Positions 5,245 through 63,770 of a DNA stretch of 64,000 nt are shown one piece after another. Both the position numbers and the translations under genes were made by a program. The notes under the pieces were generated by a model, which did not search any database, was not told the DNA's origin, and was given only the letters and a program-made list of their open reading frames with translations. The stretch lies in sequence record NC_019401.1; one strand, written 5' to 3'. Within the stretch, counting starts at the first letter, position 1. Each line of letters begins with the position of its first letter.

Positions 5245-8200
5245 ATGTACGTAGATGGATATATGGATAGGAAAAAGACTGGTGAAGTACTTCACGTAGC
5301 TGAACGTGTTAATGGTCAGCGTATTTTGCGTGAAATTGAACCAGTATATGAGTACTATGTAGAGTCTCCGCGAGGTGAATACAAAACTATCAATGGTACT
5401 TTAGCTGAGAAGTTTGAATTTACCCGTTTTTCAGAAATGAAACGACAAATGGATGCATTGCCAAGTACTGCTAAGATTTATGAAGCAGATTGTAATGTAA
5501 CATTTAAAACATTAGCTAAACACTATATGGGTAAGTCATCTCCTGATCTTAATATCGTTTTCTTCGATATTGAAACAGACTTTCACCCTAAATTCGGATA
5601 TGCTCAACCAAGCGACCCGTTTAACCGTGTAACTGCTATTTCATTATATCAAAGCTGGACTGGTAAGGATTATGTTCTTACAATGGCTCCAGTAGATATG
5701 CCAATTTACGAAGCTCAGGACATTATCAATCGTTTGAATGATGAAACGAATGATCCTAACAGCGTTGTAATTCTTTACACTGAAGAAACTGAAATGTTTG
5801 AAACTTTCTTTGAGTTAATTGAAGATAGTGACGTACTTTCAGGCTGGAACAGTGAATTCTTTGATATTCCATACATGGTTAACCGAACCAGAAAGATCTT
5901 TAACGAAGCTACATTAGCTCGTTGGTGTTTATGGAATAAAAAACCAAACGCTCGCGAAGCAGATATGTTTGGTAAAACCATTGTTACCTATGATCTGGTT
6001 GGACGTGTTCATTTAGATTATCTTGCATTGTATAAAAAACATGCTGGTCAAGTAGAACAATCATATAAACTAGACTATATCGCTGAAAAAGTAACTGGTG
6101 AAAACAAAGTATCATATGATGGTTCATTGGACAAATTGTATCGTGAAGATTATGAAACATTTCTACGATATTCTAAGCAGGATAGCATCCTACTAAAGAA
6201 AATCGATGAAAAAATGGACTTTATCAACCTACACAACCGATTAGCACACAAAGAATGCGTACTAATCAGTACTACAATGGGTTCAGTAGCACTAATCGAC
6301 ACCGCAATCATTAACCTTGCACATCAACGTGGTGAAGTAGTATTCAATAAACGTAAACTTGATGATGATGAACAAGATTTTGAGTATCAAGACTACGAAA
6401 TTGACATGGATGATGATGAAGACGATGAAGTACAGGCAGGTTCGAAAGCTGCTGGTGCTTGGGTACAAGATCCAGTACTAGGTTTGATTGATTTCTTGGG
6501 TTGTGTTGACTTTAACTCACTATATCCAACTGTACTCCGTACATTAGGTATGAGTACTGAATGTATTCTCGGTCAGCTTCGTCAGACATATACTGATAAG
6601 TATTTGGCTGATAAAATCGAAGAACAGAGAGTTAAATGGGCTAGAAATGGTGGTCGTGGTAAATTTGAACCAAAATGGACTGAAGCATGGCATGGTTTGT
6701 TTGCTAGTGTTGAATTTACAATGGTTCGTGAGAAATCACAAGAAGTAATTACCGTTGATCTAGAAGATGGCACATCATTTGAAGCAACTGGTGCTGAACT
6801 TTATGATATTATCTTCGGTGAAGATAGTACTATTGTACTAAGTGCTAACGGAACATTATTTGATAAGACTAAGTACGGTGTAATTCCAGAAATTCTTACA
6901 ATGTGGTATTCTGAACGTAAAGCACAACAGAAAATGGTCATCGACTATAAACATTTGGCAACAGATGGTTGGGAAATTCCAGAAGAAGCAGTTCAAGCTA
7001 TCGAAAAAGAACTACAGTCGCTATCTTTCGGTACTGGAATCTATAAAACAAACTTACATGAAGATGATCCAATCTATCAGATGCGTTTAGCACTTGGTAA
7101 AAATGATTATGCTCAAATGGCAAAACTTATCGCTGATAATGGTATGCGTATTGAAGATAATCATATTTTCGTAGCTGATTCTGATAAAAAGTATTGTAAA
7201 ACACAATCTGCTTTCTGGAAACAGAACCAACAGATCCGTAAGATTCTTCTAAACTCACTATATGGTGCGTTGTTGAACAAAGGTTCTCGCTTCTTTGATA
7301 AACGTCTAGGTCAATCAGTTACATTAACTGGTCGTAGTATGACTAAGCACCTAGCAAGTAAAATTAATGAAGTTTGCACTGAAACTTACGATCATAGTGG
7401 TGGTGTGGTAGTATATGGTGATACTGACTCAGTATATTTCAGTGTTGCACACTACTATAAAGAGAATGACATTCCGTTTGAAATGTCAAAAGATGAAGTT
7501 GTTGAACTTTATCAAATGATTGGTGATACCGTAGGTGCATCTTTCCCTGAATTTATGGATAAAACCTTTAATACTGGTATTGAAAAGGGTAAAATCGTGG
7601 GTGCAGACTTAGAAATGGTCGGTTCTCGTGGTCTATTCTTGAAGAAAAAGCGTTATGCTATTCTAAAATATTGGGAAGATGGATTCCGTTTAGATGTGGA
7701 TGGTAAACCTGGTAAAATTAAAGCAATGGGTCTTGAAATTAAACGTTCAGATACACCAAAATACATTCAAAACTTCCTAGAAGAAACGTTGATTGCATTA
7801 CTTATTGGTGAAACCGAAGAAGAATTACGTGCTCGTGTACGTGCATTCAAGAAAGAGTTTAAAGATAAGCCTAGTGTAGAGAAAGGATCGCCAAAAACAG
7901 TAAAAAATTACACCAACAAAGAAAAAGAATATCAGGATACTGGTAAATGTTCTGTTGGACACGTGTTGGCGGCTATACAATGGAACAAACTTCGTGAATT
8001 AAACGATGATAAATCAGTTCCAGAAGCTACTGACGGTACTAAAGTCATTGTATGTGACCTAAAACCAAATCCATTAGGCATCAAAAAGATTGGATATCCA
8101 ATAGATTGTGCTGATTATCTACCAGAATGGTATCTAGAACTTCCATTTGATGATGATACAATGGAAAAAGCTGTATTAACTAAGAAATTAGGTAATATTT

Positions 8201-8277
8201 TCGGTATTTTGGATATGGATATTGGTATTGATGAGAAAAGTACAATTGAATTGAACACTGGCTTCTTTGATTGGTAA
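5245..8277 (+). CDS. gp43: Family B DNA polymerase (gp43-like)
   Basis: ExoI DIETD, ExoII GWNSEFFDIPY, ExoIII YSKQD; polymerase motifs DFNSLYP, KILLNSLYG, YGDTDS, KKRY. Confidence 0.97.
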   Translation: MYVDGYMDRKKTGEVLHVAERVNGQRILREIEPVYEYYVESPRGEYKTINGTLAEKFEFTRFSEMKRQMDALPSTAKIYEADCNVTFKTLAKHYMGKSSPDLNIVFFDIETDFHPKFGYAQPSDPFNRVTAISLYQSWTGKDYVLTMAPVDMPIYEAQDIINRLNDETNDPNSVVILYTEETEMFETFFELIEDSDVLSGWNSEFFDIPYMVNRTRKIFNEATLARWCLWNKKPNAREADMFGKTIVTYDLVGRVHLDYLALYKKHAGQVEQSYKLDYIAEKVTGENKVSYDGSLDKLYREDYETFLRYSKQDSILLKKIDEKMDFINLHNRLAHKECVLISTTMGSVALIDTAIINLAHQRGEVVFNKRKLDDDEQDFEYQDYEIDMDDDEDDEVQAGSKAAGAWVQDPVLGLIDFLGCVDFNSLYPTVLRTLGMSTECILGQLRQTYTDKYLADKIEEQRVKWARNGGRGKFEPKWTEAWHGLFASVEFTMVREKSQEVITVDLEDGTSFEATGAELYDIIFGEDSTIVLSANGTLFDKTKYGVIPEILTMWYSERKAQQKMVIDYKHLATDGWEIPEEAVQAIEKELQSLSFGTGIYKTNLHEDDPIYQMRLALGKNDYAQMAKLIADNGMRIEDNHIFVADSDKKYCKTQSAFWKQNQQIRKILLNSLYGALLNKGSRFFDKRLGQSVTLTGRSMTKHLASKINEVCTETYDHSGGVVVYGDTDSVYFSVAHYYKENDIPFEMSKDEVVELYQMIGDTVGASFPEFMDKTFNTGIEKGKIVGADLEMVGSRGLFLKKKRYAILKYWEDGFRLDVDGKPGKIKAMGLEIKRSDTPKYIQNFLEETLIALLIGETEEELRARVRAFKKEFKDKPSVEKGSPKTVKNYTNKEKEYQDTGKCSVGHVLAAIQWNKLRELNDDKSVPEATDGTKVIVCDLKPNPLGIKKIGYPIDCADYLPEWYLELPFDDDTMEKAVLTKKLGNIFGILDMDIGIDEKSTIELNTGFFDW

Positions 8278-10501: not shown

Positions 10502-10789
10502 ATGAGTTTACACGCAATTAACGATTATGTCATTGTAAAACTAATCGATAATACAAAACAAAGTTCTGCTGGTCTTATTTTGACTAGTGTTGAGCCTCCT
10601 TGCACTGGTGTAGTTATCACAGTCGGGCCAGGGCGAGTATTAAATGATGGTTCCCGCGAAGAACATAACATTGAAGTAGGGGATGTGATCGTTTTTGGTA
10701 AATCATCACTAAATATGCCACTAGAAGATGATGATCAAACCTTCTATGTTATGAAAACTAGTGATATATTTGGGAAGAAAAATGGCTAA
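10502..10789 (+). CDS. groES: GroES-like co-chaperonin
   Basis: LHAINDYVIVK, SSAGLIL, GVVITVGPGR, IEVGDVIVFGK. Confidence 0.85.
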   Translation: MSLHAINDYVIVKLIDNTKQSSAGLILTSVEPPCTGVVITVGPGRVLNDGSREEHNIEVGDVIVFGKSSLNMPLEDDDQTFYVMKTSDIFGKKNG

Positions 10790-21154: not shown

Positions 21155-22063
21155 ATGCCAAAAAAATTAACGCCTGAAGAATTTTCCAAAAAGTCAAATG
21201 ATAAGTTTGGTGATAAATTTAAAATAATTACAGAATATGTTTCTTATGAAAAAAATATTATAATTTCCTGCAAAGAACATGGAAATTTTAACACAACCCC
21301 AAAAATACACTTAAAAGGTGCAGGTGGTTGTCCGAAATGTTCTGGTAATACTAAACAAACAACTGAAAATTTCATAGAACGATCAAAAAAGATTTATGGT
21401 GATACGTTTAACTACACGAACACAAATTACACAGGCATTAACAATAAAGTGATAATTACATGTAAAATACATGGTGATTTTGAACAATTTGTTAAACCTC
21501 ACCTTAATGGTTCTGGCTGCACAAAATGTTCAGGTAGAGCTAAACACACAACTGAGTCGTTTATTGAAGCATCTGTTAAGAAACATGGGAATGTATACGA
21601 TTATTCCAAAACCGCATATGGTAAAAATAATAAACAACAAGTTACAATAATATGTCCCACTCATGGTGAATTTGAACAGATTCCTAATAGTCATCTTTCT
21701 GGTAAAGGATGTGTTAAATGCTCAAATGAAGCATTATATTCTAAAGCAGTAAATGAAATTCTTAATTATTTTAAACAACATGATATAGAATATGAATTAG
21801 AAAAAACTTTTCCCGATTGTAAAAATATATTATCGCTTCGATATGATTTTTATATTCCATCAATCAATACTTGTATTGAATACGATGGACTACAGCATTT
21901 TGAAAGTTGTGGTTGGGGTGGAGAAGACAAATTAAAATTAACACAAGAAAATGATAAAATTAAAAATGAGTATTGTGAAAATAATAATATAGGTTTAGTT
22001 CGTATAAAATACAACGAAGACCACATTAAAATATTAAAAAGGATATTTAATGACAGAGCTTGA
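21155..22063 (+). mobile_element. Free-standing putative homing endonuclease (CxxHG Zn-repeats + PD-(D/E)xK/Vsr-like nuclease)
   Basis: Three C-x2-HG-x-F...HL-x-G-x-GC-x-KC repeats; C-terminal LRYDFYIPSINTCIEYDGLQH; more AT-rich codon usage than its neighbours. Confidence 0.75.
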
Positions 22064-22895
22064 CAATTTTTTCAATAACGTCATGGTACTCGACACTGAA
22101 ACTACTGGTGTTGACGATGACTCAGACATTATTGAATTTAGTGCATCATTTCCAGTAAGTGCAAATGATTCATTCGAGGATGTATACAACTACACTTCTC
22201 GTTTCAAACCAACCAATGACGTGCCACCTGATGCATCAGCAATTCACTTCATCACAACTGAAGATTTAGTAAATGAACTAACTTATGCTGAGAAAAGTGA
22301 AGAATTTTATCCATTATTTCAAATCAAACAGTACTATGTAGGACACAACGTGCAGTTTGACAGAAGAATGCTAAGAAAAAATCACGAACGCTTTTTCGGG
22401 ACTGAAGTTCCTGAGTTTGAAAACGATGATAGTTGGATTTGTACTTTAAAGTTAGCAAAAAAGCTATTTGCTGAAGATCCTGAATTCGAAAACCTAACTT
22501 TAAGCTATTTGTGGTTTAAATTTGGATTGAATAAGACATGTACTCACAAAATTGTGCCACATAGTGCAGAAGATGATGTGTATATGACTTATAAGGTACT
22601 TTTGCATCTAGTAAATATTGCAATCGAACGTGGCTTGATCGATACCAATAAGGAAATTGGTTCACAAGTCGTTACATTAGCAAACACACCAATACTATAC
22701 AGTGTTATGACCATCGGTAAGCACAAAGGTTGGGTAATGGAAGATGTTCCTGAGAATTATTTGAAATGGATGATTTCAAATATGGACATTATGAATCCAG
22801 ACATGCCTAACTTTGACGCAGATCTTGCCTTTACTGTCGAAACAGAAATAACTCGTAGATTGGAAAATGGACTAATGTCGTTCGACACTGAATAA
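22050..22895 (+). CDS. DEDDh 3'-5' exonuclease (ExoX/epsilon-like) with C-terminal GKHKG domain
   Basis: LDTETTG, GHNVQFD, HSAEDD; MTIGKHKG...VPENYLKW. Confidence 0.9.
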   Translation: MTELDNFFNNVMVLDTETTGVDDDSDIIEFSASFPVSANDSFEDVYNYTSRFKPTNDVPPDASAIHFITTEDLVNELTYAEKSEEFYPLFQIKQYYVGHNVQFDRRMLRKNHERFFGTEVPEFENDDSWICTLKLAKKLFAEDPEFENLTLSYLWFKFGLNKTCTHKIVPHSAEDDVYMTYKVLLHLVNIAIERGLIDTNKEIGSQVVTLANTPILYSVMTIGKHKGWVMEDVPENYLKWMISNMDIMNPDMPNFDADLAFTVETEITRRLENGLMSFDTE

Positions 22896-22918: not shown

Positions 22919-24403
22919 ATGAGTGGAACTTGTAAGTTAATACTTCAGGACGAAGTAAACTGTAAATTTGAGGGGCTTGCCCCTAATATTCGTCAAGAAA
23001 TGATTCGTAAAGTGTCATATACTTTACCATATGCACGATATACACCTGCTGGTCGTATGGGTCGTTGGGATGGAAAAGTAAACTTTATGAACATTGGTGG
23101 TAGTACTTACTATCATATGTTAGACCAGCTACTACCAATTCTTGAAAAGCATGATGTGATGATTGAAATTGACGATCAACGCATTCAGCATAATTTTGAA
23201 TTCGAAGCAATCGATGAGAATATTTTTGATTACGTCGAATTCCCACCTGGTCACCACATGGAAGGAAAAAAGATTGTCCTTCGTGAACACCAAGTGAATG
23301 CAGTAAACACTTGCCTACAAAATCCACATGGATTATTATTGGCAAGTACTTCATCTGGTAAAACACTAATTACCGCAGCAATGTCCAAATCTGTTGAAAA
23401 ATATGGTCGTAGTATTGTAATTGTTCCTAACAAAGACCTTGTTCAGCAAACATACAATGACTATGAAATGGTTGGATTAGATGCTGGTGTGTTTTACGGT
23501 GATAAGAAAGAATTAAACCATCAACATACAATTACTACTTGGCAATCACTAAACTCTTTGTGGAAGAAAACAAAGAAAGGTGAATTAGATTTAACTGAAC
23601 AGGACGTTCATGATTTTATCAACGGTGTAATCGCGGTCATTGTGGATGAAGCACACACCAGTGCTGCTGAAGCACTACACGCAGTACTTGGACAAGTAAT
23701 GAAAAATATCCCATTACGTTGGGGGCTAACTGGTACTATTCCAAAAGATCCAGTACTTGCAGCTAAAATAAAATGTAATGTTGGTGATATAATTTATACA
23801 ATCACTGCAAAAGAGTTGCAAGATAAAAAGATTCTCAGTACTTGTAACGTGAATTGTATCAGATTAAAAAGTTCTCTAAAATTCTCAAACTATCAGGAAG
23901 AATTAAAATATCTCGTTACTGATAGGGATCGAATGAGTTATGTTGCAACTTTGATTAGTGCAATAGCTGAAAGTGGTAACACATTAGTACTTGTAGATAG
24001 ATTAGAAGCGGGTGAATTACTTTGTGAGTACTTAGGTATTCCAAAATCAGAATTCGTTCGTGGTGATACTAAGAAGAAAGATCGTGAGGCATCATACGGT
24101 GAAATACGTTGGGCTGACAATAAGATTCTAATTGCAACTTATGGTGTTGCAAGTACAGGTATCAGTATTAGTCGTTTATATAATGTAGTACTAATTGAAC
24201 CAGGAAAAAGTTTTGTACGTACAATTCAAAGCATAGGACGTGGGCTTCGCCGAGCAGAAGATAAAGACCACGTAGAGATTTATGATATTTCAGGTTCTAA
24301 TAAGTATAGTGCTAAGCATATGCGTGAACGGATAGCTTACTATAATGAGGTTCAATATCCATATGTCGAGATGATTGTGGAAGATTGGCAAAATATGGAA
24401 TGA
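22919..24403 (+). CDS. uvsW: SF2 DNA helicase (UvsW-like)
   Basis: LREHQ, STSSGKT, VDEAH, GLTGT, QSIGRGLR. Confidence 0.92.
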   Translation: MSGTCKLILQDEVNCKFEGLAPNIRQEMIRKVSYTLPYARYTPAGRMGRWDGKVNFMNIGGSTYYHMLDQLLPILEKHDVMIEIDDQRIQHNFEFEAIDENIFDYVEFPPGHHMEGKKIVLREHQVNAVNTCLQNPHGLLLASTSSGKTLITAAMSKSVEKYGRSIVIVPNKDLVQQTYNDYEMVGLDAGVFYGDKKELNHQHTITTWQSLNSLWKKTKKGELDLTEQDVHDFINGVIAVIVDEAHTSAAEALHAVLGQVMKNIPLRWGLTGTIPKDPVLAAKIKCNVGDIIYTITAKELQDKKILSTCNVNCIRLKSSLKFSNYQEELKYLVTDRDRMSYVATLISAIAESGNTLVLVDRLEAGELLCEYLGIPKSEFVRGDTKKKDREASYGEIRWADNKILIATYGVASTGISISRLYNVVLIEPGKSFVRTIQSIGRGLRRAEDKDHVEIYDISGSNKYSAKHMRERIAYYNEVQYPYVEMIVEDWQNME

Positions 24404-24906: not shown

Positions 24907-25410
24907 ATGAACGTTTTAACACCTGAAAATTATGCATTTGAGATGGATTTAGTTACTGATACTATCCCTGAAGAAATGTACTGCGTATTAGATTTAAGCT
25001 CTGTTGAAGATGCTGATTATTACTTTAAACACATCTTGAATACTGTTTCGTTTAATAGTATTAGTGCAGACTTACAGATTGGTAATCACATTGTTCAAGT
25101 TCCTCTGAACTGGCAGATTCTGCTTGGTGATGAAGACACTGGAATGATGGAAATGTGTACTATTGAAAACATATTGAATATGAAAGACCCAAGGGCATTC
25201 GTGTATAATCCAATACGCTCAATGTACCCAAAATATGAGCCAGTAAAAGTACTACGTGTGTTCACACTAACTACTAAATGGCAAATACCAATGTTACCAA
25301 AGAAAAATCTACTAGCAGTACCACTTCATAACGGTACAAATCCCCCATGTGTGTACTTCGCAGATGAAAATGAGAAAATTCAAGATCTATTTTTAGGAAT
25401 TGGTGATTAA
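24907..25410 (+). CDS. Hypothetical protein
   Basis: ORF with AAGGA RBS. Confidence 0.7.
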   Translation: MNVLTPENYAFEMDLVTDTIPEEMYCVLDLSSVEDADYYFKHILNTVSFNSISADLQIGNHIVQVPLNWQILLGDEDTGMMEMCTIENILNMKDPRAFVYNPIRSMYPKYEPVKVLRVFTLTTKWQIPMLPKKNLLAVPLHNGTNPPCVYFADENEKIQDLFLGIGD

Positions 25411-26255
25411 TGTTTGATTTTAACGGTTTACCAACATCTTCAGAGGATGAAGACACAGTATCGGAATCTAAAACCAAGTTAGATATGAATCTATTACTTG
25501 AAAAAATCGATATGGCAGATTATGGGTATTATGAAACCCTAAGCGATAAAGAAAAGAAACATTTCCAGCCGTATATTGTTTTACGATGGATAAGTTCTCT
25601 TGACGACTCCGTACAATTAACATATACTGCAAAGAAAGTTGAAAGTATTTTCGGTAAATGGTCTACTGGTGGAAAAGAAGCTTTAAATGAACTTAAAGAT
25701 GAGTTCAACAGTACTGGAGCAGGAGTTTGCATCAGTGCAGCGAAGTACGAACATGCAAAATACGATTGGCGTATTAAGTTTGCAGTACAAGATAAAGCAA
25801 GTGCAGATGCACTTATTGAAACCATGAAAGAATTTGGTATAACCGGTCATGAAATCATTTCTCTCATTGATAGTACTACGATTAAGTACCATCTGATTAT
25901 GCTAAATGATATGGTTAACCAGAACTTTTGGGAAATGAAAAACCATCCAGAACTAGTGTACCAGCTTATGTGTTCCGTATCAGAAATGATCGGGCCACAA
26001 AAGCGAGCACACAACTGGTTACCACATTGCAAAGGTTTAAAGAATGTCGATAAGGATATTTTCGACATTATTAAACGAACACAATCTGAATATACTTCTG
26101 TTGACATGAATGAAGCAGAGTATAAGATTTTATTATCTGGTTATACGAAAGAAACCTTTGAAGATCTACTCAAAGATTTGGGTTCGTCTGAGCAAGAGAT
26201 TAAATCTCTTTTGAAACAATTCAAAGCAGAAAGTGAAAAGTATGGCAAAAACTAA
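25410..26255 (+). CDS. Hypothetical protein, possibly clamp-loader small subunit (gp62-like)
   Basis: KKHFQPYIVLRWIS weakly resembles gp62 FDPFMVNRALS region. Confidence 0.35.
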   Translation: MFDFNGLPTSSEDEDTVSESKTKLDMNLLLEKIDMADYGYYETLSDKEKKHFQPYIVLRWISSLDDSVQLTYTAKKVESIFGKWSTGGKEALNELKDEFNSTGAGVCISAAKYEHAKYDWRIKFAVQDKASADALIETMKEFGITGHEIISLIDSTTIKYHLIMLNDMVNQNFWEMKNHPELVYQLMCSVSEMIGPQKRAHNWLPHCKGLKNVDKDIFDIIKRTQSEYTSVDMNEAEYKILLSGYTKETFEDLLKDLGSSEQEIKSLLKQFKAESEKYGKN

Positions 26256-26961: not shown

Positions 26962-27308
26962 AACATGGAATGTATTCAGACAATAATAATGACCAACATT
27001 TTGAAGAAAAAACTAATGCACTTAAAAGTATTGCAGAATCTAAACTATCAATGATTCAACGTGGATCAGTGACAGAAATTACAATGGGTGACAGAACGTT
27101 TCAAGTTACAGATCCTAAAAGATTAGAACAAATGATTTCAGTACTGAAACATCAAGAAGAATCAATTCAGGTATTGAGAACCAAAATTAAAGAACATCAT
27201 AATGCGATTAGTGTTTTAGTTCAAGAAGTACAAACATTAAAGAATGAAGTTCAGAGATTGAAGGAAATAACTAATGGATATGGATCACAAGAATTCACAA
27301 ACTATTAA
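26958..27308 (+). CDS. Hypothetical coiled-coil protein
   Basis: Heptad-like C-terminal half. Confidence 0.6.
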   Translation: MKHGMYSDNNNDQHFEEKTNALKSIAESKLSMIQRGSVTEITMGDRTFQVTDPKRLEQMISVLKHQEESIQVLRTKIKEHHNAISVLVQEVQTLKNEVQRLKEITNGYGSQEFTNY

Positions 27309-27924
27309 TTATCGTAAAGCAAGGACTGATATTGATATTGACTTCAAAGATGGAAAGTCAGTTATTGAACAGTTGCCTTGTACAAGAAGTGTGGAAAGAA
27401 TTACTGAGGATGGGCTAGTGCCACATAATAGTGGGGTTCATTTTGATAATATCCCTGTTGACCCTATTAGTGGTTTAGCAAGCATACCATACAAAGAAGC
27501 CGAAAGATTAGGATACCAAAAAGTTGATATACTGTCTCAATCGGCTTACGAACATGTTCGGGATAGGGAACACTTAAAAGAATTAATGAACAAAGAGCCT
27601 GATTGGGATCTATTATTAGTACCGGAATTCGTCGAAGAACTGTCACAAATCAAAAAGCATATAACATTACTTAATGTATGGCGACCACGTAGTATAGATG
27701 AATTAGCAATGTTTATTGCGATGATCCGTCCTGGAAAGCGTCAATGTCAGAGTATGAATAGTTGGGATGAGGTGCGAGCAGTTATTTGGGATTATGATAG
27801 TATTGGGCTAGATGGTGAAGGTAAAAAGTTAAGATACTTTAAAAAGCCTCACGCTTATGCATATAGTTTGATGATAGTTGTTCAGTTGAACGCATTGGTG
27901 GAATATATTATTTCTTCTTCTTGA
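27274..27924 (+). CDS. DnaE/PolC (family C polymerase)-like palm/fingers fragment
   Basis: TDIDIDF, HNSGVHF, KVDILS, AMIRPG, FKKPHAYAY match DnaE PDFDVDF, HAGGVVI, KFDFLG, ALFRPG, FNKSHSAAY. Confidence 0.85.
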   Translation: MDMDHKNSQTINYRKARTDIDIDFKDGKSVIEQLPCTRSVERITEDGLVPHNSGVHFDNIPVDPISGLASIPYKEAERLGYQKVDILSQSAYEHVRDREHLKELMNKEPDWDLLLVPEFVEELSQIKKHITLLNVWRPRSIDELAMFIAMIRPGKRQCQSMNSWDEVRAVIWDYDSIGLDGEGKKLRYFKKPHAYAYSLMIVVQLNALVEYIISSS

Positions 27925-29352: not shown

Positions 29353-30399
29353 ATGATGAATCAGATACAAAATATTATGGCAAATATTATGCATGACCCT
29401 GTTCCAATTATGGATCGCTGGAACCAACATAATTGCCCTGCTTGTATTACAAGAGGACAGTCCAGACCAGACACAAAAGGTCGTGGAAACCATATGTTTA
29501 GGAATGATGGTTCGGTGGTTTATAATTGTTTCAACTGCCACTTAAAAACAGTATGGACACCAGGAAGGTACATTAGCAGAGATATGGAATCTTTGCTTCG
29601 TTCCTTTGGTGCTTCTGATAAAGAAATGATTTCTATCAAACTCATTGCTAAAGAAATGGCAGAGAGTGGTGAATATGAAATTGAAGAAAGTACTCATTCT
29701 AAACTTTATCAAAAAATAGTAACACGTGAATTACCAAGTGATGCACGACCATTTATTGAATGGGTGAATATGGAAAACATACCACCCGATTTCATTAAGG
29801 TCATCAATGCAGTAAACGACCGTAATCCATACTTGTTGGACTTAGATCTGTACTGGAGTCCTTCAAAAGAATTCTACATGTTCCAACGGTTCATCATTCC
29901 GTATTACATGAATGGTCAAATTATTGGTTATACTGCTCGTCACATTGATCCTAAAAGTGAATACCGCTATAGGAATCAAGTTAGTACGAGCATTTTTTAT
30001 AACTTTGATTTACTAAATGATGAAAGGATTCAAACAATCCTTGTCGCAGAAGGCCCAATTGATGCAAGTCTTATGGGTGGTATTTCTGCAAACAACTACT
30101 TTCTAAGTAATTCGCAACTGGATTTGTTGCATAAAGCTGAAGAACGTGGTAAAAACATTGTTATTGTTCCAGACCGAGATAAAGATGGTTTAGTTACAAT
30201 AGAACAAGCAATTGAGCATGGTTTCAGTGTAGCATTACCTGATTACGGTGCAGTACGTGATGAAAATGGAATTCGTCACATTAAGGATTTTGATGAAGCA
30301 TGTGCTAAGTACGGTAGGTTGTTTTGCTTACAACTTCTACATAAAAGCATATACACAGATAGATTCGACATTAGAGTACAAACTGAAAAATGGATTTGA
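29353..30399 (+). CDS. gp61: DNA primase (gp61-like)
   Basis: Zn-binding CPAC...CFNC; TOPRIM AEGPIDA, VPDRDKDG, KDFDE. Confidence 0.88.
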   Translation: MMNQIQNIMANIMHDPVPIMDRWNQHNCPACITRGQSRPDTKGRGNHMFRNDGSVVYNCFNCHLKTVWTPGRYISRDMESLLRSFGASDKEMISIKLIAKEMAESGEYEIEESTHSKLYQKIVTRELPSDARPFIEWVNMENIPPDFIKVINAVNDRNPYLLDLDLYWSPSKEFYMFQRFIIPYYMNGQIIGYTARHIDPKSEYRYRNQVSTSIFYNFDLLNDERIQTILVAEGPIDASLMGGISANNYFLSNSQLDLLHKAEERGKNIVIVPDRDKDGLVTIEQAIEHGFSVALPDYGAVRDENGIRHIKDFDEACAKYGRLFCLQLLHKSIYTDRFDIRVQTEKWI

Positions 30400-30406
30400 G
30401 GTTTAA

Positions 30407-31909
30407 ATGGCAAGCAACACGGACGTAAGAAAATATGACATTAGTTATCAACTATATTTGCTATCGCAAATTTTTAGTACACCAGACCTATATGTAAGGT
30501 GTAAGAACGTACTAAAACCAGATTATTTTGATAAGGAATATCACGCTAGTATCCAATATGTTCATGACTATTCAAGTAAGTATAATATAACTCCAACGTT
30601 AAATGACATTAAACACAATGCCGATTTTCAGTACAGCGAAACTCCAGTACAGGAGTTAAATCAGCAAGCAGTACTTGATAGCGTTGGTGAGTTTTGCCGC
30701 CATAAAGCCCTTGCTCTGGCAATTCAACAGGGTATGGAACTGGTTAACCAGAAACGATATGGTGGCATCGAAGAATTAATTCGAGAAGCAATGCTTGTAA
30801 CTGTTCAGAACGATTTGGGTCTAGACATTTATGAAAATCCAGAGGAAGTTATCAGTTCCCTAGCAAATATGCAAGGTACTTTTAAATCTGGTTGGGAAAC
30901 GCTTGATTATAAACTATTCGGTGGTTTTGGTCGTCAAGAACTTGAGATCTTTGCGGCAGCATCCGGTGGTGGTAAATCAGTTGTTTTACAAAATTTAGCA
31001 GTAAACTTTAGTAAAGCTGGGTTAAATGGTGCTTATATCACACTAGAACTAGCATCTGAGCTTGTTGCCGTTCGTATCTATGGTATGATGGTAAACACTG
31101 CACAGAACAAAGTGAAAGTCGATATTGATGAAACCGCAGCAAAAATTAAAATTGAAGAACGTAGTAACGGTAAACTTCGTATTCACCGTCTACCAGAATC
31201 AGTCAGTACTGTAAACGATATTGAAAGCTATATTCGTGAACTACAGATTAAAACTGGCGTTAAACTCGATTATGTATGTGTTGACTATTTGGATCTACTA
31301 ACATCTGACCGTTGTGGACCGAATGATAAATCTAACGCATTCGTAAAAGATAAATTTGTATCAGAAGAATTACGTGCACTTGCAATGAAAATGGATTTAA
31401 CTGTATTCACCGCTTGTCAGTTTAACCGTAGTGGTGTTGCTGGCGAAGATGTTAAGAGCCAAGCACAAATCGCGGGTGGTATTTCAAAAATCTATACCGC
31501 AGATAACGTTATCTATATTGATGCACGTAAAGACCGTGGCGAAATGGTCTTCGACTTCCAGAAAACACGTAACAGTTCCGCAGTTGGTTCCCGTCTAATT
31601 ATGTCTTATGACATTGATTCACTTCGTGTGCTTGACCATCCACAAACTGTTCAAGAAATGGAAATTAACACTACATTCAGACACAGTGGAAAAGTGATGC
31701 TAGGTAAAGGTAACGTCATGGCTCATCCAACCTTACCAGGTAATTCGGCAATGAGTTCATTACAAAATAAACTTACAAATGTTATTCCTAAGCCTAGTAC
31801 ACAAATTGCACAAAATAGTGACAGTACTGAATCGCCAGATATAAATACACCAAAGGCTGATGAGGATAAAGTTTCCCGTATGCGGGACTTTTTGAATGGT
31901 AGGATATAA
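30407..31909 (+). CDS. gp41: Replicative DnaB-like helicase (gp41-like)
   Basis: AASGGGKS, YITLE, VDYLDL, TACQFNR, QKTRN. Confidence 0.92.
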   Translation: MASNTDVRKYDISYQLYLLSQIFSTPDLYVRCKNVLKPDYFDKEYHASIQYVHDYSSKYNITPTLNDIKHNADFQYSETPVQELNQQAVLDSVGEFCRHKALALAIQQGMELVNQKRYGGIEELIREAMLVTVQNDLGLDIYENPEEVISSLANMQGTFKSGWETLDYKLFGGFGRQELEIFAAASGGGKSVVLQNLAVNFSKAGLNGAYITLELASELVAVRIYGMMVNTAQNKVKVDIDETAAKIKIEERSNGKLRIHRLPESVSTVNDIESYIRELQIKTGVKLDYVCVDYLDLLTSDRCGPNDKSNAFVKDKFVSEELRALAMKMDLTVFTACQFNRSGVAGEDVKSQAQIAGGISKIYTADNVIYIDARKDRGEMVFDFQKTRNSSAVGSRLIMSYDIDSLRVLDHPQTVQEMEINTTFRHSGKVMLGKGNVMAHPTLPGNSAMSSLQNKLTNVIPKPSTQIAQNSDSTESPDINTPKADEDKVSRMRDFLNGRI

Positions 31910-60940: not shown

Positions 60941-61246
60941 ATGTTCCATCCGTTTTTTGATCCTTCATCGTTAAGTAATCAGGAACTTCATGACAAAATA
61001 AATGAAGTTTCAATGCGTATTGCATCGGCACGTGCTGCTGGTATACAATACGAAGTTATACAATCGATGTTTACTTTGATTCAATGCTGTGAAGAAGAAT
61101 TGCGTACTCGCCAAGCTAAAGTAGATTTGGCTGAGATACAGAAAGAAAATAACAATTGTGTATTTGATTCGGATAGTTATAACAACTCAACAGATGATAA
61201 GAAAAATGAAGGTACAAGGAAACAGAACTATAAGCCAGGATGGTGA
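60941..61246 (+). CDS. Hypothetical coiled-coil protein
   Basis: ORF with AGGAGG RBS. Confidence 0.7.
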   Translation: MFHPFFDPSSLSNQELHDKINEVSMRIASARAAGIQYEVIQSMFTLIQCCEEELRTRQAKVDLAEIQKENNNCVFDSDSYNNSTDDKKNEGTRKQNYKPGW

Positions 61247-61724
61247 TGTTCGTTTAGATCTGAATGCCGTGGTTTATGCTATAAACTGCGGTGCAGATAT
61301 AACTTACATTCAACTGAATGAGCAAGATGAAGCTGAACGTTTGAAGTTCAACGACAACTGTAAAAAGTTCGGATTAGAAGAACGTATGCTAGATTATACC
61401 ATAGAACATGATAAAAATCATGAATTGTGGCGTTATGATCCTGTATATGACAAAATCAATCTCGAAGACTATTTTCTTAATTTGTGTAGTACTGATGAAC
61501 AGCGTGACCGAGTACTATATGAATTAAGTCTGTTCGAAAACTACAACATGACAAAACTACTACGTTGTATGATATGGCTAGTGGATTATCTCGAAGAACA
61601 TAATATTTTTTGGGGATTAGGTCGTGGAAGTTCAGTGAGCAGCTACTGTTTGTATTTGATTGGATTACACTTGGTTGATTCTATTAAATACGATTTAGAT
61701 GTTAACGAATTTTTGAAATGGTAA
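61206..61724 (+). CDS. DnaE/PolC-like N-terminal palm fragment
   Basis: RVLYELSLF...GLGRGSSVSSYCLYLIGLHLVDSIKYDLDVNEFL matches DnaE RLETELQVI...[34 protein letters not shown]. Confidence 0.85.
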   Translation: MKVQGNRTISQDGDVRLDLNAVVYAINCGADITYIQLNEQDEAERLKFNDNCKKFGLEERMLDYTIEHDKNHELWRYDPVYDKINLEDYFLNLCSTDEQRDRVLYELSLFENYNMTKLLRCMIWLVDYLEEHNIFWGLGRGSSVSSYCLYLIGLHLVDSIKYDLDVNEFLKW

Positions 61725-62155: not shown

Positions 62156-62476
62156 ATGGAGTCAAAAGTACTTACCGCTTGTAAAGGCAAAGTTCTAGTA
62201 TCTGATTTAGATATTGGTGAACAAAAATTAAAATCTGGTATCGTTCTTCGTAATGATGACGGTACTGTTCGCGGAGTACATAGCCGTTGGGCTAAGGTAT
62301 ATTCCGTTGGTGAAGATATTACTGAACTAAAACCAGGCGACTGGATTTTAGTTGCACATGGTAGATGGTCAAGAACTATTACCGTGGATGAAGTATCATT
62401 AAATTTAGTAGATTATCCAAAAGGCGTTCTCGCTGCTGCTGATGAACGTCCAGACTTCTTAGGTCTAGGATACTAA
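62156..62476 (+). CDS. Second GroES-like co-chaperonin (divergent, gp31-like)
   Basis: KVLV, KSGIVL, AKVYSVGEDITELKPGDWILV. Confidence 0.75.
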   Translation: MESKVLTACKGKVLVSDLDIGEQKLKSGIVLRNDDGTVRGVHSRWAKVYSVGEDITELKPGDWILVAHGRWSRTITVDEVSLNLVDYPKGVLAAADERPDFLGLGY

Positions 62477-62813: not shown

Positions 62814-63770
62814 ATGACCACCACTCTATGGACTGAGAAATATCGCCCAAATGGTATTGAAGACTATGTGTTTAAAAACCCAGCGTTTAAGCTAAAAATG
62901 GAAGAATGGATCAGAACTGGTCAGATTCCACATATTGGGTTCTTCGGACCAGCAGGTACGGGTAAAACTTCAGCTATCAAAGTACTAATCAATGGGTTAG
63001 TGGAAAATGGTTTTGTTGACCCATCTGATGTAACAATTCTTAACATGTCAGATGAAGGTATGGATGCAGTACGTGAAAAGATTGATGCTGCTGCACGACT
63101 TTCAGCATTTGGTGACTACCGCATTTTTGTTCTTGAAGAAATGGAACAAATGGGTATCAAGGCACAAGGTTCACTAAAACGTATCATGGAAGATTATCAC
63201 GAGAATGCTCGTTTTATTCTTACATCAAATGAACCACACAAAATTCTCAAACCAATTATCTCTCGTGTACAATCAATTATGATTGAAAAACACGATCCAG
63301 ATGATTTTACTACTCGCATCATTGAAATTCTAGTCAATGAAGGTGTAGAGCTAGATTCAGAAGAAAGTCTAGATCTAGTTGATAAGTATATTAAATGTAC
63401 TTTTCCTGATTTCCGTAAAACATTGAACACTCTCCAGAGTTCAGTTGTTGATGGTAAATTAGTCAAGCTAGAAGACTCAATTGATAGTACTGCAAGTTAT
63501 CGAGCAGCTATTATTGAAGCACTAGAAGCAGGAAACATCCGTCAAATGCGTGAACAAATTGTACAGAATATTCCTGAAGATGAAATCGATGGTTTCTTCT
63601 CATTCTTGTACCGCAATGTTGATATGTTCACAAAAGATGAAATTAAAGAAATGAAGATCAAAGTTAAGATTCGCGATGCAGTAGTTAAGCAAGCATCGGT
63701 TTCTGACCGTGAGATGAACCTATCTGCACTTCTTTGTGAAGTGGATTTGATCTGCAACGACCAAATGTAA
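62814..63770 (+). CDS. gp44: Clamp loader large subunit (gp44/RFC-like AAA+)
   Basis: WTEKYRP, GPAGTGKT, LEEME, SRV, PDFRK. Confidence 0.93.
   Translation: MTTTLWTEKYRPNGIEDYVFKNPAFKLKMEEWIRTGQIPHIGFFGPAGTGKTSAIKVLINGLVENGFVDPSDVTILNMSDEGMDAVREKIDAAARLSAFGDYRIFVLEEMEQMGIKAQGSLKRIMEDYHENARFILTSNEPHKILKPIISRVQSIMIEKHDPDDFTTRIIEILVNEGVELDSEESLDLVDKYIKCTFPDFRKTLNTLQSSVVDGKLVKLEDSIDSTASYRAAIIEALEAGNIRQMREQIVQNIPEDEIDGFFSFLYRNVDMFTKDEIKEMKIKVKIRDAVVKQASVSDREMNLSALLCEVDLICNDQM

Follow-up and report, generated by a model that had tools for sequence, protein, structure and literature searches.

We report here that two small proteins of Cronobacter phage vB_CsaM_GAP32 (JN882285 / NC_019401, 358,663 bp), a jumbo myovirus (Rak2-like, genus Mimasvirus), are probably the two subunits of one minimal family-C nucleotidyltransferase, related to the alpha subunit of bacterial DNA polymerase III (Pol III alpha, DnaE) and acting as an auxiliary polymerase, a reading of the sequences to which we assign a probability of roughly 0.8. 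The two genes, GAP32_323 (here the N-half) and GAP32_282 (the C-half), lie 33 kb apart in the window that was analyzed, a stretch of 64,000 nucleotides that equals positions 186001–250000 of the GAP32 genome, and a genome coordinate is the window coordinate plus 186,000. The two-subunit reading of such a pair has already been published as a computational prediction by Iyer, Anantharaman, Krishnan, Burroughs and Aravind, who describe a Pol III alpha that is both minimal and split in group 2.2 jumbo phages (Viruses 2021, PMC7824862). What we add is incremental: fused forms, a carrier that is not a jumbo phage, quantified selection, two conserved gene neighbourhoods, a candidate exonuclease and errors of annotation. 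The features on which the reading depends are the following, all on the + strand.

61206..61724, +, GAP32_323, the N-half, predicted N-terminal (triphosphate-binding) subunit of the minimal, split Pol III alpha; 172 amino acids (aa), ATG start
61491..61718, +, residues 96–171, DnaE-aligned helical part of the Pol-beta-like palm (Pfam, PDB, profile and hhalign matches)
61620..61634, +, GRGSS motif, G139–S143, equivalent to the DnaE GRGS nucleotide-phosphate-binding loop (family alignment and alignment with E. coli alpha)
27274..27924, +, GAP32_282, the C-half, predicted metal-binding palm strands and reduced fingers; 216 aa
27328..27342, +, DIDID, D19–D23, equivalent to the catalytic PDxDxDF strand of DnaE (aligned to DnaE1 412–424; strand 19–24 of the model)
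27526..27528, +, D85 in KVDIL, equivalent to the third catalytic aspartate in K-x-D-x-L-G (aligned to GLLKMDFLG of DnaE1; strand 83–88)
27727..27738, +, RPGK, R152–K155, equivalent to RPGP of the DnaE fingers (aligned to LYRPGP of DnaE1)
27841..27852, +, KKPH, K190–H193, equivalent to F-N-K-S-H of the DnaE fingers (aligned to YAFNKSHA of DnaE1, 772–787)

The N-half open reading frame (ORF) is 100% identical to GAP32_323, annotated as 'DNA polymerase III alpha subunit'; a longer frame from a GTG at 61158 is possible, homologues, however, begin with MKVQGNR. Residues 96–171 match positions 20–95 of the 260 in Pfam PF07733 DNA_pol3_alpha with an expectation value (E) of 7.3e-9 and a score of 36.1 bits, where the family cut-off is 23.9, and over its full length the protein is matched by phrog_11127 'DNA polymerase' (E 1.5e-87). 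A PDB search with the single sequence returned T. aquaticus Pol III alpha at residues 385–454, and a family profile built from 27 sequences aligns with E. coli Pol III alpha 320–392 and with M. tuberculosis DnaE1 336–406. When this family was compared by hhalign with two full-length phage DnaE proteins, a match of 97% probability and E 1e-10 covered DnaE 332–411, the DxDxD of that DnaE being at 419–423. The residues G137, G139, R140, G141, S142 and S143 show no variation among the 27 homologues, which extend down to ∼35% identity, and the family-C hallmark of a Pol-beta-like palm with a GRGS loop is accordingly found on this protein. In the AlphaFold2 model of the N-half (predicted local distance difference test score, pLDDT, 85.1) the DnaE-like part is helical (97–112, 116–131, 147–151 and 166–169) with the GRGSS loop between helices, and a Foldseek search of the PDB with this model placed Pol III alpha in the top three positions (probability 0.97, E 0.19), with PolC also appearing. 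These matches, which go far beyond chance, bear out the initial annotation, made from the sequence alone, in its statement that the C-terminal ∼75 aa correspond to a DnaE segment carrying the GRGS motif. Its further statement, that the N-terminal ∼95 aa replace the PHP domain, holds only in the sense that no PHP is present: Pfam gave no PHP match in either protein, and the first ∼95 residues of the N-half are without an assignable relative, yet conserved in the family (G29, W75, Y81), and shortened in some family members and in one fused form.

The C-half, which starts MDMDHKNSQTINYRKARTDIDIDF and matches phrog_11778 'DNA polymerase' at E 2.6e-108, supplies the remaining motifs in the same order as DnaE. 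Its family profile aligns collinearly with DnaE1 412–424 (PDIDIDF), 568–669 and 772–787, of which the second segment holds the third aspartate in K-x-D-x-L-G followed by RPG, and the last holds FNKSHA; the RPGK motif is also aligned with tal-f-RPGp of phage DnaE. Across the 27 members of the family D19, D23, K83, D85, R152, P153, K155, K190 and H193 never vary, with D21 near-invariant (at least 90% of sequences). The three catalytic aspartates expected of a family-C enzyme are therefore present, but on a separate gene (D19/D21/D23 plus D85 of 27274..27924), and the finger motifs RPGP and FNKSH have their counterparts on that same protein. Searched individually, 19 members out of 27 match PF17657 DNA_pol3_finger (lowest E 3e-5), the GAP32 member itself falling below threshold. 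The AlphaFold2 model (pLDDT 90.7) consists of the DIDID strand 19–24, strands 37–44, 47–56 and 83–88, and helices through residue 215, and Foldseek found Pol III alpha in all of the first 11 places (probability up to 0.99, E 0.015), among them 4iqj, 7pu7, 2hpi, 3e0d, 2hnh and 5fkw. Each family profile matched one ORF in a scan of the window, with no further DnaE-like fragments found there.

The annotation of the C-half is inconsistent. GAP32_282 is a 'putative membrane protein' in GenBank and a 'DNA polymerase' in RefSeq, and in many GenBank phage genomes its homologues are called 'putative membrane protein' or 'hypothetical protein'. We reject the former label, which looks wrong for GAP32, for CBB and for the pEa_SNUABM phages, since what is predicted to span the membrane is the long finger helix at the C-terminus (191–215), modelled with high confidence. 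In phage Atu_ph07 the RefSeq coding sequence FDI40_gp074 starts at an internal methionine and omits MKNIPDIDIDF; the ORF that begins at the upstream ATG (NC_042013 58304..58879) restores the motif.

The two proteins meet at a sharply defined break. On DnaE1 the match of the N-half ends at 406 and that of the C-half starts at 412, and the C-terminus of the N-half falls ∼5 residues ahead of the position of the catalytic DxDxD, a fit to ∼5 residues that agrees with the initial annotation, in which the first protein was said to stop right before a DxD opening the ORF at 27274..27924 and the two were described as cleanly complementary. Most N-half homologues stop no more than 1–2 residues from EFLK, where the DnaE match ends, and a few have tails of up to ∼20 residues, and C-half homologues start 0–18 variable residues ahead of DxDxD. 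The position is constant in homologues down to ∼35–40% identity, including those of the 141-kb Alishewanella phage Slickus01 and of Agrobacterium phage Atu_ph07, where the N-half ends ...SEFLE* and the C-half begins MKNIPDIDIDF. In the AlphaFold2 models the break comes after the final helix of the N-half and ahead of the opening beta strand of the C-half, and so, as modelled, it separates the helical, nucleotide-phosphate-binding subdomain of one Pol-beta-like palm from its metal-binding beta-sheet subdomain. On neither half alone is the active site complete.

Together the two halves amount to ∼390 aa, and much of what surrounds the palm in DnaE1 (1184 aa) has no counterpart. Only ∼45 residues, mostly a beta hairpin at 37–56, separate the DxDxD strand from the segment that aligns from 568 onward, where DnaE1 has ∼140 that include the thumb, and essentially no thumb is left; the finger stretch between RPG and NKSH is reduced from ∼100 residues in DnaE1 to ∼30. 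The C-half ends ∼15 residues past the NKSH segment, the last to be aligned (772–787), and beta-clamp-binding, OB and tau-binding domains are absent from it.

Both genes are maintained. The two families comprise 189 and 376 clusters at 90% identity, counts that are limited by the length bounds of the search, and the C-half gives 562 clusters at 50% identity (E ≤ 1e-3). The ratio of nonsynonymous to synonymous substitution rates (dN/dS), compared among Mimasvirus, Eneladusvirus, Asteriusvirus and Alcyoneusvirus only where dS was unsaturated, is 0.02–0.15 for the N-half and 0.01–0.14 for the C-half. By tblastn the C-half occurs in 96 phage-collection records, and the record counts of C-half and N-half agree for phages of Escherichia (34/34), Pseudomonas (11/11), Erwinia (8/8), Salmonella (8/8), Xanthomonas (4/4) and Yersinia (4/4). 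Both halves are present in all complete genomes examined, which include the Rak2-like genera, the PA5oct group, Atu_ph07, Phosso, SCTP-2 and RsoM2USA as well as Xoo-sp13, Vibrio 2.275.O, RAS14/CM1 and Slickus01; for XacN1 the C-half is listed, and the presence of the N-half is deduced solely from Xanthomonas record counts that agree (4 and 4). The sole C-half-only record identified is a partial one of 109.5 kb. For Slickus01 (141,644 bp) tblastn listed the C-half only, and a six-frame profile search located the N-half 11 kb away at E 4e-15. The extra N-half matches that were checked are full-length DnaE proteins of unrelated phages (e.g. nickie dnaE and PCSE1 dnaE2), and other extra matches, in Streptomyces, Enterococcus, Bacteroides and Clostridium phages, cover the conserved part only. 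The distance between the genes is 44 kb in PA5oct and 182 kb in Atu_ph07.

Natural fusions provide a classical sign that two proteins work as one. Single chains joining both halves occur in metagenomes and were found twice among the best 150 cluster representatives, the rest being stand-alone proteins of ∼180–215 aa or fragments. The first, P0309, has 375 aa, of which residues 10–180 correspond to the whole N-half (37% identity) and 190–374 to the C-half (35%); its junction reads ...IKEFIKDNKEGIYNIADFDID..., with a linker of ∼9 residues, and it is encoded on ENA ERZ28653423 scaffold_211374 (2415 bp; L020 1066–2193). The second, P0371, has 336 aa, the motifs RGSGGAS and PDYDIEL and a junction reading ...DEFIKDTRPDYDIEL..., and comes from JGI 3300080032, contig Ga0669126_0033275 (7992 bp; L021 3171–4181). 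The initial annotation had argued for a maintained two-subunit enzyme rather than decay, and the strong purifying selection on both genes (dN/dS 0.01–0.15), their co-occurrence in every complete genome examined (for XacN1 by counts), their complementarity and these fusions all uphold it.

The P0371 gene lies directly 3′ of a gene for a 552-aa PF03090 'Replicase', with overlapping reading frames, and its contig also encodes a PG_binding_1 protein and a methyltransferase. This contig may be a small element replicated by a prim-pol-type replicase together with a minimal family-C polymerase.

The initial annotation also placed the N-half next to a GroES and the clamp loader and the other half near primase and helicase, and both placements were found to be correct. 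The genes in question, together with two further replication genes of the window, are listed here.

62156..62476, +, gp31/GroES-like co-chaperonin (phrog_931 'head morphogenesis', E 4e-19; weak phrog_3188 GroES match)
62814..63770, +, gp44/RFC-like clamp-loader ATPase (phrog_168, E 2e-75; Pfam DNA_pol3_delta2/AAA)
29353..30399, +, primase (for this gene and the next: phrog_47 and record annotation)
30407..31909, +, gp41/DnaB-like helicase
5245..8277, +, GAP32_257, full-length gp43-type family B DNA polymerase (PolB; annotated with Pfam DNA_pol_B_exo1 and DNA_pol_B)
22050..22895, +, GAP32_275, stand-alone DnaQ/epsilon-like 3′–5′ exonuclease, 281 aa (PF00929 RNase_T, E 1e-21)

At the N-half the order is N-half, a 124-aa ORF, the gp31/GroES-like gene (248156..248476 in the record annotation), a 96-aa ORF and the gp44 clamp loader, which lies 1.1 kb downstream of the N-half with the gp31/GroES-like gene standing between them. 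Of three distant metagenomic contigs, two repeat the succession of N-half, Cpn10-like gene and AAA+ clamp loader. At the C-half the block runs from the epsilon-like exonuclease through a UvsW-like helicase (22919..24403) and five small genes to the C-half, which is followed by a reverse 117-aa ORF, a 323-aa ORF, the primase and the gp41 helicase. Three metagenomic contigs with C-halves only 43–45% identical to that of GAP32 show this order again (UvsW-like helicase, C-half, reverse small ORF, ∼270-aa ORF, primase, DnaB helicase), and in these three contigs no N-half was found within 10 kb of the C-half.

The start of each half also overlaps the end of the small gene upstream of it, the N-half with GAP32_322 by 41 nt (61206..61246) and the C-half with GAP32_281 by 35 nt (27274..27308). 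The former overlap is kept in CBB, XbC2, BF, fHe-Yen9-04, 121Q and RaK2, and the latter measures 35 nt in CBB, BF, fHe-Yen9-04 and Kaldavass and 23–32 nt in 121Q and RaK2. These overlaps suggest translational coupling of both halves with their upstream neighbours.

The GAP32 window also encodes homologues of gp44, gp41, gp32, UvsX and UvsW, and GAP32_257 is presumed to be the main replicase; a homologue of this gp43-type PolB is noted for phage CBB (PMC5259590). The exonuclease GAP32_275 matches phrog_192 'DNA polymerase exonuclease subunit' as well and has a C-terminal extension of ∼100 aa. At E ≤ 1e-12 its homologues occur in 86 phage records, whose counts per organism nearly match those for the split polymerase. 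In GAP32, RaK2, 121Q and Vibrio 2.275.O the exonuclease gene is located ∼5 kb upstream of the C-half. This distribution and position make GAP32_275 a plausible candidate for the proofreader of a mini-polymerase that has no exonuclease of its own.

We can now suggest how the two chains would work. The N-half would contribute the helical subdomain, whose GRGSS loop corresponds to the DnaE loop that holds the phosphates of the incoming nucleotide. The C-half would supply the beta-sheet with the three metal-binding aspartates (DIDID, KVD) and shortened fingers carrying RPGK and KKPH, whose DnaE counterparts contact nucleotide and template. Since neither active site is complete, no intein is present and no other means of joining the chains is apparent, the halves would have to associate non-covalently, giving a ∼390-aa enzyme that consists of a palm and reduced fingers. 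Most likely, replication is carried out mainly by the gp43-type PolB and the split enzyme is an auxiliary DNA polymerase within a replication/repair module, where it could be proofread by the stand-alone epsilon-like exonuclease and aided by other replisome proteins of the phage. Physical association, DNA polymerase activity, a role at the fork and partnership with the exonuclease are what we infer from the homology, the conserved break and motifs, the selection, the co-occurrence, the fusions and the synteny.

A bolder version of this model would have the heterodimer, the epsilon-like exonuclease and the clamp and clamp loader of the phage form a second replicase at the PolB fork, in a mixed B/C-family replisome, or would make the fused form beside the prim-pol 'Replicase' the smallest self-sufficient family-C replicase. 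We consider this rather unlikely; if true, either the mixed replisome or the self-sufficient fused form would offer a way to model the ancestral Pol III core by experiment.

Other explanations of the pair differ in how much of the enzyme they retain. The two proteins could form a two-subunit nucleotidyltransferase of the Pol III alpha lineage that is not a templated replicative DNA polymerase, and would instead act as a terminal transferase, as a gap-filling or primer-processing enzyme, or in the addition or modification of nucleotides on DNA or RNA. The loss of the PHP, thumb, clamp-binding and OB domains and the presence of a full PolB in the phage are both consistent with such a function, and the Pol-beta-like fold is generally known to underlie many non-polymerase transferases; the assignment to this fold follows PMC7824862. 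However, the finger motifs that serve templated synthesis in DnaE (RPG, NKSH) are invariant and both genes sit in deeply conserved replication neighbourhoods, and we regard a non-replicative transferase as improbable. Further removed is the idea of two independent, non-catalytic proteins, such as decoys or adaptors for subunits of the host Pol III holoenzyme or for parts of the phage replisome. It would account for genes that are 33 kb apart, in different clusters and with partly different neighbours; yet invariant metal-binding aspartates and an invariant GS loop are unexpected in binders, the strict co-occurrence and the fused forms tie the two proteins together, and the pair lacks those parts of DnaE to which epsilon, beta and tau bind. 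This makes separate, non-catalytic roles very unlikely.

The split itself could be explained in two further ways, to both of which we give almost no weight. Intein-split DnaE genes that are encoded far apart are known in cyanobacteria, and the GAP32 halves could in principle be joined after translation by a split intein in the same manner. The sequences at the break exclude such trans-splicing: neither the C-terminus of the N-half nor the N-terminus of the C-half carries additional sequence, which leaves no room for an N-terminal intein fragment of ∼100 aa or a C-terminal one of ∼35 aa, and the break point is unlike the cyanobacterial one. Alternatively, both ORFs could be decaying remnants of a captured full-length dnaE, in keeping with the CBB genome paper, which calls its N-half, at 172 aa against the 1120 aa of bacterial DnaE, a 'truncated' Pol III alpha (PMC5259590). 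Decay is at odds with dN/dS values of 0.01–0.15 for both genes, with invariant motifs, with the lack of other DnaE-like fragments in the window and with identical boundaries across hundreds of clusters at 50% identity; the shared boundaries, the low dN/dS, the co-occurrence and the fusions exclude pseudogenes.

Several observations weigh against reading the pair as one auxiliary family-C polymerase. With a complete PolB that has its own exonuclease, a second polymerase is not obviously needed, and without a thumb or a clamp-binding domain a grip on the primer-template is hard to account for. The homology of the C-half is more difficult to detect than that of the N-half: searches of Pfam and PDB with its single sequence gave nothing significant and family profiles were needed, and even at the family level the matches are modest, with a whole-sequence E of 0.009 in hmmsearch. 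A comparison of the C-half family by hhalign with a thin alignment of two DnaE sequences produced only a local match of low probability (E 0.037), which we do not count as contrary evidence because the order of the hmmsearch segments, the PF17657 matches and Foldseek agree. The Foldseek E of 0.015 is likewise modest; for both halves, this is due to the targets, which are 900–1200 residues long and contain large insertions. One member of the C-half family, P0092, has DIVID instead of DIDID. The co-occurrence of the halves may reflect common descent within one phage clade, and the distribution that the epsilon-like gene shares with them may have no other cause. Finally, the literature searched contains no biochemical or structural data on either protein.

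The GAP32 pair and the split Pol III alpha of group 2.2 phages are the same object, with nothing essential that differs from the account in the sections of Iyer et al. on these phages (PMC7824862). Those sections describe a phage-specific enzyme made up of an N-terminal nucleoside triphosphate-binding protein and a C-terminal Mg/template-binding protein, encoded by distant genes alongside a family B polymerase, and propose that they cooperate with the family B enzyme in the synthesis of one strand or in repair. In GAP32 we find the same three traits, namely two small stand-alone proteins of these kinds, distant genes, and a family B polymerase (5245..8277) in a T4-related replication apparatus. 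The main text of that paper does not name GAP32; it does name, as a group 2.2 phage, Atu_ph07, which has clear homologues of both GAP32 proteins. The fused homologues, the 141-kb carrier, the dN/dS values and the two conserved neighbourhoods do not feature in its description of the enzyme. In the literature searched, the enzyme is treated only by Iyer et al. 2021 and in genome notes, with no experimental follow-up, and a 2026 review of jumbo phages does not mention it.

Compared with bacterial DnaE (E. coli, T. aquaticus and M. tuberculosis DnaE1; PDB 2hnh, 4iqj and 5lew), the pair has the same order of motifs and shares the Pol-beta-like palm, the GRGS loop, the DxD with a third aspartate, and the RPG and NKSH motifs. 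It differs in having ∼390 aa in two chains rather than ∼1160 aa in one, without PHP, with essentially no thumb, with most of the fingers deleted, and without beta-binding, OB and tau-binding domains. The cyanobacterial intein-split DnaE is similarly a family-C polymerase that comes from two distant genes, but its halves carry split-intein fragments and are spliced to a full-length chain, whereas those of GAP32 have no such fragments and a minimal product, with the break inside the palm just ahead of the catalytic strand. Full-length DnaE or PolC is also encoded by phages, such as Pseudomonas phage nickie, with whose DnaE the N-half aligns at 332–411, and group 3.2 jumbo phages, e.g. Bacillus phage G; these enzymes are host-like, PHP-bearing and sole replicases, unlike the minimal and split GAP32 enzyme that stands beside a PolB. 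If active, the GAP32 pair would be the smallest known family-C polymerase core, at ∼390 aa in two chains, and would reveal what catalysis requires of Pol III alpha. It would further provide a natural example of a polymerase active site built from two gene products, and would bear on the origin of bacterial replicases. As the idea has been public since 2021, its value now lies in experiment rather than in discovery.

Some minor observations concern other genes of these phages. The window contains a second GroES-like gene, the Cpn10-family GAP32_262 at 10502..10789, the gene at 62156..62476 being of the gp31/phrog_931 type. GAP32_279 (25410..26255, phrog_11758) is a possible gp62-like small subunit of the clamp loader; gp62 is reported absent from the CBB genome (PMC5259590). 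In Slickus01 a 142-aa gene directly behind RFC/gp44 gives matches to phrog_11758 (E 2e-8, limited to the N-terminal ∼50 residues) and to phrog_225 'clamp loader' (E 3e-4), and gp44, this 142-aa gene, a gene for a C2H2 zinc-finger protein, a small ORF and the C-half follow one another contiguously. In GAP32, gp44 lies near the N-half and GAP32_279 near the C-half. Slickus01 is T4-like and its DNA polymerase is annotated as two abutting coding sequences (L022 2558–4261 and 4261–5196), with a separate 'DNA polymerase I' coding sequence at L022 484–1374. Another type of split DnaE is found in Bacillus phage vB_BauM_KLEB27-3, where two adjacent coding sequences labelled 'DNA polymerase III alpha subunit' (L027 2298–4373 and 5382–6668) have an HNH endonuclease gene between them.

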